Shown here piece after piece: positions 4,858 to 34,019 of a stretch of 64,000 bases of DNA; positions within the stretch are counted from its first letter, which is position 1, and every line of letters starts with the position of its first letter. The notes beneath the pieces were generated by a model. The model saw nothing but the letters and a program-made list of their open reading frames with translations, made no database searches and had not been told where the DNA came from. Both the position numbers and the translations under genes were made by a program. Origin of the DNA: Bugula neritina. Lineage: Eukaryota > Animalia > Bryozoa. The stretch is from NCBI GenBank assembly GCA_964035545.1, contig OZ037773.1:5299751-5363750 (forward strand), in the 5' to 3' direction.

Positions 4858-7800
4858 ATGGCGTGTCTGCGGTTCATTGCTTTAACAATTGTTGTTCTAA
4901 TTTGGGATTTTCACTTATTTGTCAATTGCAGCAGTTTACAGGGTATGTATTTAACTTTTAATACAGATTCAGTAAGTTGGTAAAGTAGTGCTTTGTTAGG
5001 GCTTTTAATCAAGAAGCAAGAACGGTTAATTCATATCATGAACATTTTTTACTGAAATATTTTATTGCCACATTGCGTCAGTCATAAATAAAACAACTGA
5101 AACTTTTATCACATTTTCAACTTTTCTCACCCGTATAACGTTTAATCGATTCGAGTAGCGGGTAACATTTTCAACTATTATGTAAAAAGACACCTTGCTT
5201 GACTCCTGAATAAAACATTTGATTGATCTGCAGAAACTCAAAGCTGTAAAGTTATTTCAACAACAAACCAAGTCAACTTCCTGCCCGACTCTGAGCTGAT
5301 TGGTCGGAAAGAGTTTGCCAGAACGCAAGTTGAGTGTCTTCAGAGATGTCAAGAGAAGCCGCAGACGTGCTCTGCTGTAATCTATGATTCAGATGGTAAG
5401 AAACAGAATATTGTTTTTGATATCTTATTTTATATTATGTTTTATTATATTGTATAATATATTTATATAGCATTTCTATATATTCATAATGCCTGTAATA
5501 TAATACAATAGGTTGCTTTATTCACAGCAGAGCTGTTTTATTTAATATCACAATTTTCAATGAACCCTTAATGTTTTCACAATAAAACTCTGTGAAGTCT
5601 CAAACAACTGCTTTGAAATTTCTCCATAATTTTATCCGTAATGTAGCGCCTCATGACGCGCTTTTACATGTTAGTGACGTGCGAGAATACACGCTAGTGA
5701 CCTGCCACACACAGTGCGTGTGTTGCGAGTGAAAAAATTTATTGGCCAATGATGTTAGCGGTAAACTTTACTGCTCGCCTACAGACGTTTGTTTTTAAAA
5801 TTACGTCATCGGCAAAGTGACTTAGATAGAAGTAGAAATGCAAATTATATGAAACTGTTTTAATTCAGCTCGCTAAAAGCTAAAACGTGAATTGAAATAA
5901 AAAAAATGTGCTCGCTAAATGATAATATACCAATTAGATCAAACACGCACAAGCTTGCCGCTGGGCTCGCTCAGCATGCTAAGCGCATGAAAATCCTACT
6001 CATAACGTCCAAGTTTTGGGCTAAACGTGATTTCTCGCATGCCACGCTCATGTAAAACGCGTCGTGTGGCCCTACACTAACACTAAACTTTAAGGAGAGT
6101 ATTAACAATTATCTGGTGACATAGTTGCTAACTCAAAACTTGGATGTAACAGCTGATTAGTATCGAAGCAGTTTATACAATATAAATTTTTGAATCTTAT
6201 AATACATTCGGTTATTATGCTGTTTACATCAACCTCGTGATTCACAATTTCACGAGTAATTTAATTTTTGTAATTGTCTCATTTCAGGCATATGCAACGA
6301 GTTCAACGGCAATAATGTGGATATTAAAGATACTCTTAATGGTCAGAATGCAGATAGACGTGAAGTGTTTCTACCTATGCTATCCAAAGGCAATGTAAGT
6401 TTGTCATAATATTACAGATGTGCCTGTGTGCATGCGTGTGTGTTTCATAAATATATAATGAAAAGTTAGAAGATTGTCACAATAAAAGCAAATGCTATTT
6501 AATTGTATACTGAACAATTTTTTTAACAGCATAATATTATTTTAGTTGGTTGATAAGTTATTTAACAGAACCTTGATACATTATTAAATTCATGTGCACC
6601 ACGTATGATTAACAAAATTTTTTTTAGGGTATAGTCACAGCATACAAGCAATAAATTAAAAAATACCTTCATAGACATAATATAGAAAATCAAAGCCATA
6701 AAAAAATTATGAGTTGTTTCGAGTGTTTCACAAATTATTGCAAAATATTGGGTATCCTGTAGTAAGATTTTTAGAACAACATTAAGTAATAGCTATGCCA
6801 ATTAGTCTAATGTAACTTCACATGCTATCTATAGCAAGAGAATTGTTAGAGCGAACAACGTTAATTGATTCATTTTCTAGAAATATAATGATAAGAAGAT
6901 TTAGCCTAGGTTATGGTAAAAAACTTTGTTTCTATTCTTTCAAAATCTTAAAGTTCTGAATTAAACAAGATGTTAGAATATTAGGAACATACTACTGTTT
7001 GAATTATACCAATAAGTTTTCCTATTGAAAACCTTCCTAATGGCCTCAAAAAGGTGTAGTATAAAGTCCAGCAAAGGGGCATTTTATTATGAAAGAATAA
7101 CTTCTTTTTAATTTAACATGCCATTCCTAAATATTATGGAAAAATCACCACAAATTTTTCTAACAAAAATAGTTAAACCATAGCATGGCTTACGCTTGCC
7201 TTTTTCATCAGTCAAGAGAATAATTGCTGAGTTAAATGCTTATGCTTTAAATATCTTGTAGATAATATTACAAGGTTTTAAAAAAAATTTTTTTTAACCA
7301 ATTAAGACCTAACAACTTCTAATAATAAAATGTTATAATGTACCTACACGTTTTACTCTATATAACATGGTGTACCATGTCATATTGTAGAGTAAAAAGT
7401 ATACACTGTATGTATTGTGGTATGATTGTATGTTTAATAAAATATAAACTTTTTGTGTATTTTAAAAATACAGAGAATGACCTATCCCAAAGTTCAAGGT
7501 TCATCTGCCCTGAGAGTAATTGCACACATGTCTGTGAGAGCCCATCAAAGTGCAAATGGCTGCCACCATTGGTATCTGACCTTTGATGATGTCACCTGCT
7601 CCAACCCTGGCACCATTGAGATGATGGACCACCGAGCCTTCGCTGACAACTACTATCGGAGTATTGATCGTGAGTGGCACATTTTGGTTTAAGTTTTACA
7701 ATTACTCAACATGCAGCTTCTGCTTTTGTTGTGCCAGAAAAGTCGATGCCTGTTTTGTTTGCCGTGTGTCCTGATTAGATTGTAAATGTCAATAAGAAAA

Positions 7801-31600: not shown

Positions 31601-34019
31601 TATTTGCATTCTAAAAGAAATTAAAACAAGCTTTTTGCATAGCATTTTTGAGTTAGAAGCCAATCTTAAATCGGAATGAAGCTCTTGCAGTGATTTCATT
31701 TGATATGATATATCTAGATGCATGGATTTGTGTGAAACCAACAGAAACCTTCAGTGTTGAAATTTTCGATGATTTTCCACAACGAAATAAGGTAAAGTCT
31801 TGATAATGGCAAAGCATGTGGTTTATTAAGGATTGTAAAACACGGCATAAGGCAAAAAGATCTAGAACTTTCTTTCAGGTGCTAAAGGTAAACAGAAACT
31901 GATGAGTCATGGCATACCTTCAGGTTGGTAATAGACACTGGGGCATTGTGGGTCATTTTTCAGGCAAATATTTATACAGTCAAGTTCACATCGTACAGAC
32001 GACTTCCTGGAGACTATGTTTGAGCTGATGGAGTTTAAATCGACTGTTTTGTGGACTTTGTACGTTTTCCAATCAGAAACTTCTGTACAAATATAGAAAA
32101 ATTTAAACAAATGTTATCAGCATTTGAAAAGCATAAAGTTTTAATCCAAACAACAAACAAATTGTGGTTATACTTAGATTATTGAATATCATACTTCTGA
32201 GCAAAGATTTCCATTATTTAAAATCTAAAAATATTTGAGCTGCACAGATAGTTGTCTGTGTAATATATACTATTGCTCCAGAATATTATGTTTTGCATTC
32301 ATATTTTGCCTATTGCAACTAACAAGTTTTTTTAAATTAAACTTAAATTAAATAAAATAGCTTCTTAAGTTGATAGACTTTTCATTGATTTACCAAAAGG
32401 TTTATTTCCAGTTATTCTGCTTTATTTCAATGCATATTGAAATATTATAGAGCATTGTTTATTTTAAAATATTTACTACAGTTGAATCAAAGCAGAAAAT
32501 CAATGAGTGATAAAACGAGCATTTGCAATGCTAATATACATACGAAATGTTGTCAATATGTATATTCTATTATATTTTTATTATTTACTTATTTACTTAT
32601 ATACTTGCTATTTCCTATAACATATTATATTGATTATGAATATTTTTTATTTTTTATTTATCTATCAGATTTAGAGTTTGGTAAAGGAATTATAATCAAC
32701 AATAAATTTTGTGTCTTGCTAGATATATACTAAAACAGTACAACTTGAAGTATTTTTAATTTACTATTATTATTAAAATAGTAACTTTTGCTGAATTCTA
32801 ACGCTTATACTTCTTCTGACAAGAAACTACTATAGGCCTACCTACAAAGTACAAATAATAACAGTATATATTATATTTTTTAAACTTAAACTACAAAAAT
32901 TGCAAAACTTTTTTACTCAATCACAAACGCAATACTGACAATTACTTAAATTACCCAGTTTTACTAAAAACTTTAATTTAGGTTTAGTCTTTGTGACATA
33001 AGTTAACAAAGGTTCAAGCAGATGAAAATATACCATGTATTCTTCACATTTTCATTAAGATATTTCAATGAAGTTTTGTGTGTTCATAAACTGATATTTA
33101 CAGTACATAATAAAGTGTAGCAGTTAATGCTTTTATGTTCTACAAACATCAGGGGAATGGTGCAAATTCGAAGCTATACTTGGCAAATTAGTTGTTAATA
33201 TTTCCTTTAACAGGAAACTTTAAGATATTCTTAGAATTTATACTTCTTAAAGCACTTAGTGAGCAGCTTTATTATGTTAAGGGTCTTGCTGTATACATTA
33301 TACAGTATATTGATTCTGTAAAAGGAAAGAAAGAATTGGTGAAAATAATGCTGCATGTTACATACAATATGTATAAACTACTATTATGTCATATGGCAAC
33401 TATAACTCTTTTAAAGCAAATACGTAGAAAAACAATATAAATAAATACAAAAGGACACCAATTGGCTTCAAAATGTATAGTATATTACAGTATTCAAGTA
33501 TATTACACATATAATAAACATATACTATACATTATATATATATATAATAAACATATACTATACATTATATATATATAATAAACATATACTATACATTATA
33601 TATATATATATATATATATATATATATATATATATCAGGTTCTCACATTTCTAAAAATAAAAGGGAGGTTTATCAATGAAAAACATTTTAATACCAACAA
33701 GTGGAAATGTGCCAGCATATTCATTCTATTAGATATATATATATATATATATATATATATATATATATATATATATATATATATATATATATATATATAT
33801 ATATATATAAATTGGGTGCACATGCAAATGATCTATTGAAGTTTTTTATTAGTAAGATCATAAAAGTAACAAGATAGCTGGATATACCTTTGAAATTGTA
33901 AAAAAATTACATTTAGTGTTTATTTGAAATTTCTTTTAAAACTTACCTCTAGCAGAAGTAGCGCAGAGAAGTGAATAGAAAAGGCATAACTTAAGTGAAA
34001 GTAGGTGCAAGGCAGCCAT
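19676..34019 (-). CDS. Gene B: paralogue of gene A; signal peptide + PAN/Apple-like + Thr-rich mucin-like stalk + 3x CTHRC1 C-terminal-like domains, 13 exons, ~731 aa
   Basis: Minus-strand exons 34019-33947, 32082-31918, 27798-27311, 26911-26822, 26088-25887, 25109-24957, 24542-24427, 23989-23886, 23162-23050, 22003-21833, 21416-21197, 20656-20559, 19878-19676. All introns GT-AG, 2196 nt, open frame. Signal peptide MAALHLLSLKLCLFYSLLCATSA. PAN-like CELDCINICLKNDPQCPSVYYQPEG...ICYQL. Domain cores CTRWYFLFDDSECSNPGPID, CARWSVRVGGSECS and CARWFVEIGDAECANPGPIES. Intron phases match gene A and two exon lengths are identical (171 and 98 nt). Confidence 0.85.
19916..20558. repeat. Compound microsatellite (CA)n-(CGCACACAC)n-(CATGTG)n-(CATATA)n filling the last intron of gene B
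   Basis: Directly visible. It begins at the donor site (20558) and ends ~37 nt before the acceptor (19879). Confidence 0.97.
22437..23061. repeat. 20 bp minisatellite (TGCACTTACATGAATTAACT), ~31 copies, overlapping the gene B exon 9 donor
   Basis: Head-to-tail 20-mers with variants CGAACT/TGAACT/TAAATT and no spacers. Confidence 0.97.
27325..27705 (-). repeat. Coding 21 bp repeat encoding (VPTTTTT)n mucin-like stalk in gene B exon 3
   Basis: ORF 27254-27955 (-) translation. Synonymous variation between units and a preserved frame. Confidence 0.93.
27934..31602 (+). mobile_element. Academ-like DNA transposon, decayed (copy 1), in gene B intron 2
   Basis: Ends TAGTCTGGCAGAA...TTCTGCCAGACTA with ~150 bp imperfect TIRs and a 3 bp TSD TTT. 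Frameshifted transposase remnants: SKTAKLW...DWTLHL, GNHTMHHKRGQFDSIWSDMTIEVTFVRFGH, HKDEMQLRIQSDSKDRESVKRKIELCNDPL, RAHLQVAIW, and a C-terminal Cys-rich CSC...CTEFC.C...CCN. Confidence 0.8.
29612..30010 (+). mobile_element. 5'-truncated RTE-clade LINE fragment nested in Academ-like copy 1
   Basis: Translates to ATEMRMLR...WEDHITNDNI...RRPLQ*YGHVRRRD...KRKR...KKRLMDTVKD, the typical post-RT C-terminus of RTE non-LTR elements. It interrupts the transposase after ...ALVNI. Confidence 0.75.
33505..33808. repeat. ~33 bp tandem triplet plus two (TA)n runs, gene B intron 1
   Basis: ATAATAAACATATACTATACATTATATA x3, then (TA)n at ~33597-33634 and ~33733-33808. Confidence 0.9.

Follow-up and report, generated by a model that had tools for sequence, protein, structure and literature searches.

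We analysed a 64,000-nucleotide (nt) stretch of the genome of the bryozoan Bugula neritina (assembly GCA_964035545.1, contig OZ037773.1, positions 5,299,751 to 5,363,750; hereafter the window), which is AT-rich (about 32% GC) and was placed on contig C9 of the 216-Mb assembly, and found in it two intact genes, gene 1 and gene 2, whose predicted proteins would each consist of a signal peptide, a PAN-like cysteine module, a spacer and three tandem copies of the C-terminal head domain of CTHRC1 (CTHRC1_C, C1q-like jelly rolls). Our preferred reading, held with moderate confidence, is that these genes are intact but divergent members of a large lophophorate family of secreted proteins in which the three heads form a pseudo-trimer within a single chain, and that the proteins act as soluble extracellular binders.

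Gene models and domain content

Stop-free segments with CTHRC1-type motifs were located at 4858-13569 of the + strand and 34019-19676 of the - strand, and exon borders were set on the genomic sequence by the open frame together with the requirement for GT and AG at the intron ends. Gene 1 (+ strand, 4858-13569) comprises 12 exons and encodes 562 amino acids (aa), gene 2 (- strand, 34019-19676) comprises 13 exons and encodes about 726 aa, and the two genes are convergent, tail to tail. Both open reading frames (ORFs) run intact from ATG to stop and all 23 introns are bounded by GT and AG, the border of gene 1 intron 10 having been shifted by one base, which left the protein unchanged. When the gene 2 segments were searched against the gene 1 region the exons paired one to one, the two proteins being 30% identical. 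The original prediction, made from the letters of the window alone, had proposed two intact multi-exon ORFs, three CTHRC1-type repeats per protein and no Gly-X-Y run, and these points were borne out by the spliced models and by the searches that follow; the signal peptides that it also proposed are probable.

The Pfam model of the CTHRC1 C-terminal domain (PF25815, 137 positions, cut-off 27 bits) matched single exons, each on the expected part of the model, with 38.6 (E 1.6e-9), 37.8, 33.2 and 27.7 bits. A local hidden Markov model (HMM) of the domain, built from database relatives and run on the spliced proteins, gave three near-full-length CTHRC1_C domains in the product of gene 1 (residues 113-229, 245-391 and 414-545) and three in that of gene 2 (250-384, 399-545 and 566-708), indicating that the exon joins restore contiguous domains. 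The conserved Cys, Trp and Gly positions were all retained in both genes, and homology of the six repeats to the CTHRC1 C-terminal domain is proven at the level of sequence profiles. Pfam scans of the window exons and of 10 relatives brought up neither a C1q nor a TNF family. Gly-X-Y runs of at least 5 were absent from every frame of 4001-35000, and within the two proteins such runs did not exceed 3. The leaders of gene 1 and gene 2 are hydrophobic (2.7 and 1.9, respectively, on the Kyte-Doolittle scale, KD, over 12 aa), hydropathy revealed no membrane-like stretch after the leader in either protein, and both are probably secreted.

The weakest part of the layout is the N-terminal Cys module. 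Gene 1 exon 2, which holds only part of it, scored 20.7 and 20.3 bits against PAN_1 (PF00024), below the gathering cut-off of 21.4 bits, and when single exons were scanned no PAN_1 match was obtained for gene 2 or for three paralog exons. In an alignment of the module from five bryozoan genes the Cys columns were invariant and the Cys spacing was conserved, and in hhalign the profile of these five modules matched the Pfam-positive modules of Lingula and of a further relative, P0004 (from run SRR32924703), with 74.9% probability (E 2.6e-5, 40 columns), the match lying on the C..C......C core; the Lingula and P0004 homologs themselves exceed the PAN_1 cut-off (21.7-25.8 bits). The PAN module proposed originally fell short of the Pfam threshold, which gene 1 narrowly missed and at which gene 2 gave nothing; we consider the module a probable PAN domain, below threshold by sequence.

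Several candidates were discarded. A 764-aa model of gene 2 (acceptor at 27912) contained 38 odd residues and was dropped, 27798 being preferred from the comparison with paralogs. The one GT..AG joint seen when four runs of one study were compared with window positions 4800-10290 (5,491 letters), from 5451 to 7275, had a side of 21 letters and was judged an artefact, AT-rich and of low complexity with no open frame behind it. The four runs were DNA-like; X2-X4 matched at only about 90-93% and covered introns too, indicating a relative, a haplotype or repeats rather than RNA. Constraint on gene 2 exon 5 could be gauged on a 979-nt contig of a JGI sample, which evidently derives from a related animal. 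The exon was 95.5% identical without indels, versus 89-91% identity and 83 gap columns in the flanking introns, a weak sign of constraint in the expected direction.

Predicted structure of the three-domain head

In canonical CTHRC1 a collagen triple helix joins three chains, so that the three heads can trimerise. The head has been modelled as a C1q-like jelly roll able to do so (PMC7058181), and a sequence search returned no solved CTHRC1_C structure. AlphaFold2 models were obtained for two full-length relatives, P0005 of Lingula (predicted local distance difference test, pLDDT, 75; predicted template modelling score, pTM, 0.71) and P0004 (pLDDT 78, pTM 0.75). In both, the three-domain region was confident and the N-terminal quarter was not, and about a quarter of the chain was disordered. 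The top Foldseek matches of the P0005 model, and the realignments of both models, were man-made trimers in a single chain, aligned across the whole three-domain region. They comprise adiponectin 4DOU (Z 26.8 and 25.3; 3.9 Å over 340 residues), C1q 5HZF and 5HKJ (Z 26.7 and 25.4; 3.4 Å over 338 residues), Cbln1 5KCA (Z about 24, with one value of 24.7) and APRIL-BAFF-BAFF 4ZCH (Z about 22, with one value of 22.2); taken together, Z was 21-27, and every alignment extended over about 340 residues at 3.4-3.9 Å. The next matches, among them TNF-like lectins and Chlamydia Pgp3, were single domains with Z of 7-10, and it is this gap that makes the trimer match convincing. The inter-domain linkers measure 15 and 22 aa in gene 1, 14 and 20 in gene 2, and 11 and 18 in the models; being short and of like length, they fit a head in which the ends of the chain are near one another. 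Prediction of the Lingula domains as three separate chains gave a complex score of 0.43 (0.40 with the middle chain swapped), which speaks neither for nor against. Judged by the models of these two relatives, a single covalent pseudo-trimer of C1q-like form is the most likely arrangement of the three heads.

We therefore propose a molecule in which three heads in one chain, joined by linkers of 11-22 residues, would fold back into a compact covalent pseudo-trimer with the geometry of the C1q/TNF head and three non-identical faces, the covalent linkage taking the place of collagen-driven trimerisation. The PAN-like module would lie beneath this head, and gene 2 would add a Thr-rich stalk of the O-glycosylation type.

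The gene family and the weighing of alternatives

Genome-wide, PF25815 gave at least 117 exon matches and a profile of the first-domain exon found 37 copies, with clusters on contigs C9, C5, C3 and C6, both counts being lower bounds. Nearly all of the 117 matches adjoin a first-domain exon of the triple-domain family, and no collagen-bearing canonical CTHRC1 was seen among the matches so bounded. In all 10 loci sampled the three domain types followed one another in the same order with no Gly-X-Y. The first-domain exon of gene 1 is up to 51% identical to distant paralogs versus 35% to gene 2, which, with the low identity between the two proteins, indicates that the window genes are neighbours and not a sister pair; what had been described as a paralogous pair is better described as two members of a family with at least 37 genes. 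In a tree of 85 domains (139 columns, quick search only) the bryozoan domains 1, 2 and 3 each grouped together (support 98, 98 and 95), so that the triplication is older than the split of gene 1 and gene 2. The triple layout may have arisen more than once, as the tree does not firmly join domain 1 of bryozoans with domain 1 of Lingula.

Several of the sampled loci also have the PAN-like exons and, ahead of domain 1, a spacer exon rich in Cys (CNGR.C...E.C..GC......C.G), which resembles a CSG.PC....C..DC....AVC.G stretch of Lingula proteins and separates the PAN-like module from that domain. Neither window gene has this exon, and no first-domain N-terminal exon was recognisable in gene 1. Elsewhere in the genome, a stray third-domain C-terminal exon (L014 4267-4449, - strand, that is G000:C9:10237267-10237449) has no other family exon within the 17 kb covered and is probably a gene fragment. 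On contig C3 (G000:C3:26055000-26132000) the match scores of three family genes are the same and the genes follow one another at intervals of about 34.1 kb, a pattern suggesting that a whole segment was triplicated in tandem very recently.

A profile search of 1.84 billion proteins yielded 381 matches. The best was the 321-aa B. neritina protein KAF6026444.1, annotated as 'CTHRC1', which contains domains 1 and 3 with the middle domain skipped and is about 95% identical to a paralog in this genome (by eye, from the printed sequences). Proteins of 506-637 aa from Lingula anatina, annotated as 'uncharacterized' (XP_013395411.1, XP_013395410.1, XP_013399537.1 and further paralogs; LOC106162620, LOC106165752, LOC106180315 and LOC106178942), carry PAN_1 and three CTHRC1_C domains above the Pfam cut-offs, and word-indexed protein searches returned little besides Lingula. 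In a public run, a 2.6-kb contig that is probably a transcript holds without interruption a 611-aa ORF with PAN_1 and three CTHRC1_C domains, likewise above the Pfam cut-offs. By sequence, the family is common to at least Bryozoa and Brachiopoda, and the lineage-specific origin first suggested is not supported. The layout is already in public databases as uncharacterized proteins and is new to the literature, in which no paper on PAN plus three CTHRC1_C was found, so that the earlier remark that no such protein had been described applies to papers and not to databases. The only systematic paper on the family defines Cthrc1 as a collagen repeat plus a head and names choanoflagellates, dinoflagellates and bacteria as the only groups having heads without collagen; neither bryozoans nor Lingula nor heads in tandem figure in its main text (PMC7058181). 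Collagen-less heads thus occur outside animals and a sponge protein has collagen together with four heads; either direction of change is conceivable, and the proposal that PAN replaced the collagen part is not supported as worded.

Intron positions are partly shared within the family. In domains 2 and 3 of both genes the Trp codon of C-x-R-W (TG/G) is interrupted by an intron of phase 2, which is missing from domain 1 of both; a phase-1 intron lies two residues ahead of G-x-C in 6 of 6 domains. The Lingula genes have introns before Y-x-K (phase 0) and G-x-C (phase 1) at the same places as the bryozoan genes and lack the Trp-codon intron. The Cthrc1 family is described as having a conserved intron close to the 5' end of the region that codes for the head (PMC7058181).

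Expansion in tandem clusters accompanied by diversification makes soluble extracellular binders the most likely role, whether in lectin-like pattern recognition or in matrix or ligand binding. It should be considered, nevertheless, that several observations weigh against the picture of two functional genes with single-chain trimeric heads and a binding role. The exon joins of both genes are predictions from genomic sequence. Gene 1 domain 1 lacks the first ~24 profile positions and gene 2 domain 2 has a weak HMM score (46 bits), so that one or both heads may be imperfect. AlphaFold2 was run on relatives that share no more than about 27% identity with the window proteins, and may place C1q-like domains as a trimer from its training. 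The sponge relative has four CTHRC1_C domains and not three, and keeps collagen. The binding function, for recognition or for matrix, is our interpretation of the family pattern.

If the heads were arranged as beads on a string and trimerised between chains, the proteins would build a network, as collagens VIII and X do with their NC1 heads, and could belong to the zooid-wall matrix or cuticle. The C1q-like heads of network collagens do assemble between chains (PMC7058181), large tandemly expanded families are common for structural matrix genes, gene 2 has a mucin-like stalk, and the four domains of the sponge relative misfit a closed trimer. We nevertheless regard a network as unlikely, as both full-length models pack one C1q-like trimer (pTM 0.71-0.75, Z 25-27 against single-chain trimers), the linkers of 11-22 aa are short, and the number three and the order of the domain types are fixed across 10/10 sampled loci and in Lingula. 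The homology of the head to CTHRC1, and the remark that larvae and a strong ability to regenerate are frequent in groups rich in Cthrc1 genes (Leclere et al., PMC7058181), would agree with cofactors of the CTHRC1 kind that modulate Wnt/planar-cell-polarity or TGF-beta/BMP signalling in budding, metamorphosis or regeneration. We find this improbable: some 37 copies that have diverged fast (the two window genes are 30% identical) misfit a conserved cofactor, the proteins lack the collagen part and bear an extra PAN-like module, and tandem expansion, fast divergence, the PAN-like module and the mucin-type stalk together favour extracellular binding over such a role.

A different doubt concerns the genes themselves, which might be unexpressed or decaying copies at the edge of the family, their ORFs being relics and their exon joins unused. 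Such decay would suit exon joins predicted from genomic sequence, the micro- and minisatellites that abut three splice sites, the lack of the Cys-rich spacer exon in both genes and of the first-domain N-terminal exon in gene 1, and the solitary third-domain exon elsewhere, which indicates that fragments exist. It is hard to reconcile, however, with 25 exons free of stops and frameshifts, 23 canonical introns, full retention of the conserved Cys, Trp and Gly residues, and one exon that is better conserved than its introns and indel-free relative to a related animal, and we consider it very improbable. Starting from intact genes with single-chain trimeric heads, one could go further and suppose that a lophophorate CTHRC1 gave rise to a single-chain hetero-trimeric head which, in bryozoans, was multiplied into about 37 secreted recognition proteins with three binding faces that evolve independently, serving innate immunity or self/non-self discrimination in colony fusion. 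We consider this extension doubtful; if true, it would reveal a recognition system on a scaffold not known in such use.

Features of the window and comparison with known systems

The exons of both genes, together with the spacer exons of paralogs, are listed in Table 1. The Thr/Pro mucin-like spacer encoded by gene 2 exon 3, about 140 residues with 64% Thr, had been overlooked by the original prediction; the exon holds 21/42/84-nt tandem repeats.

Table 1 Exons of gene 1 and gene 2 (window coordinates) and Cys-rich spacer exons of paralogs (locus coordinates). A slash marks the splice site.
Feature	Location	Strand	Content	Observations
Gene 1 exon 1	4858..4942	+	Start codon, putative signal peptide	First ATG of open frame; hydrophobic core KD 2.7; donor CAGG/GTATGT, phase 1
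Gene 1 exon 2	5234..5395	+	PAN-like module, N-terminal part (C..EC..C......C)	PAN_1 20.7 bits, E 3.6e-4; profile-profile match to Lingula PAN modules
Gene 1 exon 3	6288..6394	+	PAN-like C-terminal part (G-ICNEF...), spacer	Strong splice sites; position and length of 'G-LCYEL...KG' exon in paralogs
Gene 1 exon 4	7474..7669	+	Domain 1 middle (Y-x-K..LRV..C-x-x-W-Y..C..P)	PF25815 38.6 bits, E 1.6e-9; one of 37 such first-domain exons genome-wide
Gene 1 exon 5	8255..8413	+	Domain 1 C-terminal part (G-x-C...C...TGW...E), linker 1	PF25815 positions 95-137, 25.1 bits; phase-1 junction
Gene 1 exon 6	9658..9761	+	Domain 2 N-terminal part	Splice junctions; inside domain HMM match 245-391
Gene 1 exon 7	10096..10202	+	Domain 2, Y-x-K..LRI..C-G-R-W(TG/)	Donor TG/GTGAGA within Trp codon; similar to gene 2 counterpart, E 2.9e-8
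Gene 1 exon 8	10807..10913	+	Domain 2, (G)FIWVDGNEC...	Acceptor TTTTTCAG/G finishes Trp codon
Gene 1 exon 9	11306..11476	+	Domain 2 C-terminal part, linker 2	PF25815 26 bits; splice junctions
Gene 1 exon 10	11561..11762	+	Domain 3 N-terminal and middle-left, ends C-S-M-W(TG/)	Donor TG/GTAAAT
Gene 1 exon 11	12123..12220	+	Domain 3, (G)YFQIDGNDC..P	Acceptor TTATTTAG/G; donor CAAG/GTAAGG
Gene 1 exon 12	13379..13569	+	Domain 3 C-terminal part, Cys tail (RCSGSPTATCN), stop codon	PF25815 33.2 bits, E 7.7e-8; acceptor last in series of repeated acceptor-like sites
Gene 2 exon 1	33947..34019	-	Start codon, putative signal peptide	Hydrophobic core KD 1.9; donor AGAG/GTAAGT
Gene 2 exon 2	31918..32082	-	PAN-like module, N-terminal part, divergent	Aligns with paralog modules, Cys and Arg columns invariant; no Pfam match
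Gene 2 exon 3	27311..27798	-	PAN-like C-terminal part (G-ICYQLSD), then Thr/Pro mucin-like spacer	Skipping breaks frame; 5' end uncertain: 27798, 27795, 27876 or 27912
Gene 2 exon 4	26822..26911	-	Domain 1 N-terminal part (FQNIQHFW...G)	Junctions; HMM match starts at model position 8
Gene 2 exon 5	25887..26088	-	Domain 1 middle part	PF25815 37.8 bits, E 2.8e-9
Gene 2 exon 6	24972..25109	-	Domain 1 C-terminal part	PF25815 27.7 bits; 3' end uncertain (24957-24972), every candidate donor weak
Gene 2 exon 7	24427..24542	-	Linker 1, domain 2 N-terminal part	Junctions; donor 24427 or 24433
Gene 2 exon 8	23886..23989	-	Domain 2, Y-D-K..LRV..C-A-R-W(TG/)	Donor TG/GTAGGC
Gene 2 exon 9	23050..23162	-	Domain 2, (G)SVRVGGSEC...	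Donor is first unit of 20-nt x 31 minisatellite
Gene 2 exon 10	21833..22003	-	Domain 2 C-terminal part, linker 2	Acceptor at position homologous to other domains; similar to gene 1 counterpart, E 6.9e-11
Gene 2 exon 11	21197..21416	-	Domain 3 N-terminal and middle-left, ends C-A-R-W(TG/)	PF25815 positions 1-57; donor TG/GTAAGT
Gene 2 exon 12	20559..20656	-	Domain 3, (G)FVEIGDAEC..P	Donor leads straight into hexanucleotide microsatellite
Gene 2 exon 13	19676..19878	-	Domain 3 C-terminal part, Cys tail (TTCTPGTPVTCGT), stop codon	Like gene 1 exon 12, E 1e-6; ORF closes
Paralog spacer exon	L008 8576-8701	-	Cys-rich spacer	
Paralog spacer exon	L005 4750-4851	-	Cys-rich spacer	
Paralog spacer exon	L006 665-823	+	Cys-rich spacer	
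Paralog spacer exon	L001 9252-9422	-	Cys-rich spacer	

Simple repeats lie directly on splice sites of both genes. A minisatellite at 22437-23061 (- strand sense; 20-nt x 31, with a GTAAGT donor in each unit) starts at the exon 9 donor of gene 2, and a hexanucleotide array at 20200-20557 begins at its exon 12 donor. In gene 1, a (TG)189 microsatellite (10392-10769) stops 37 nt before the exon 8 acceptor and a 63-nt repeat at 13237-13366 duplicates the acceptor of the last exon. A repeat in intron 2 of this gene (5536-6087) is of very high copy number, with a summed contig depth of about 39,000 versus a baseline of about 100-200 in the run matching the assembly. Between the convergent 3' ends lie two inverted repeats (14580-15431 and 16600-17451) of 852 nt, 98% complementary and 1168 nt apart, which may represent a foldback element or else an inverted duplication of recent date. 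A retrotransposon-like fragment occurs twice, in gene 2 intron 2 (29199-29933) and at 53651-54382, both copies having peptides such as NWEDH(I/V)TNDNIKEEAKI in common, and a Gag-like ORF with a zinc knuckle is found at 59514-60206. An imperfect CA-rich microsatellite block of 1.5 kb (45441-46952) produces the strong negative GC skew at 44-48 kb.

CTHRC1 has been studied intensively in fibrosis and cancer. The trimeric, C1q-like nature of its head rests on modelling, and a collagen-less family with three heads per chain would supply independent evidence for the trimer; a single-chain member, being monomeric, is probably also an easier target for structure determination. To our knowledge, almost nothing has been described of bryozoan immunity and colony recognition at the molecular level, and a tandemly expanded family of 37 secreted proteins is a candidate recognition or matrix toolkit in these animals.

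Compared with canonical CTHRC1, the window proteins are likewise predicted to be secreted and have the same head domain, PF25815, with the motifs Y-x-K..LRV, C-x-R-W-Y-F, E-C..P, G-x-C and TGW..EE in common, but they have no collagen repeat, carry three heads per chain instead of one and add a PAN-like module. About 37 fast-diverging copies stand here against one conserved CTHRC1 in vertebrates, where the gene is single and slowly evolving (PMC7058181). The Lingula proteins and KAF6026444.1, none of which has been studied, belong to the same family and are collinear with the window proteins over 440-555 residues at 26-28% identity, although Lingula and the mainstream bryozoan members have the Cys-rich spacer that both window genes lack. 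Other relatives indicate that CTHRC1_C domains also stand in tandem, and are also paired with PAN, in proteins with different domain numbers and partners: P0008 of the sponge Oscarella pearsei combines collagen, kept there unlike in the window proteins, with four CTHRC1_C and fn2, and P0013 (1400 aa) combines three CTHRC1_C with laminin G, fn2, PAN and pentaxin.

The nearest functional parallel is found in molluscs, in which proteins with three gC1q domains bind lipopolysaccharide and peptidoglycan (PMC10672478, PMC5519582). Like the window proteins, these C1qDC proteins (HcC1qDC5/6, CfC1qDC-2) are secreted, have three tandem C1q-type heads and no collagen, and come from expanded families, but their heads are true gC1q and not CTHRC1_C, they have no PAN module and they belong to another phylum. 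We know of no demonstration of a single-chain trimer for them either. Single-chain trimers of C1q, adiponectin and TNF are built by protein engineers. The engineered trimers 4DOU, 5HKJ, 5HZF, 5KCA and 4ZCH and our family models have in common three jelly rolls joined by short linkers in one chain around a threefold axis; the former are man-made gC1q or TNF fusions, whereas the latter derive from a natural fusion of CTHRC1_C with 6-9% identity to them. Nature appears to have made a single-chain trimer too, with three faces free to diverge.

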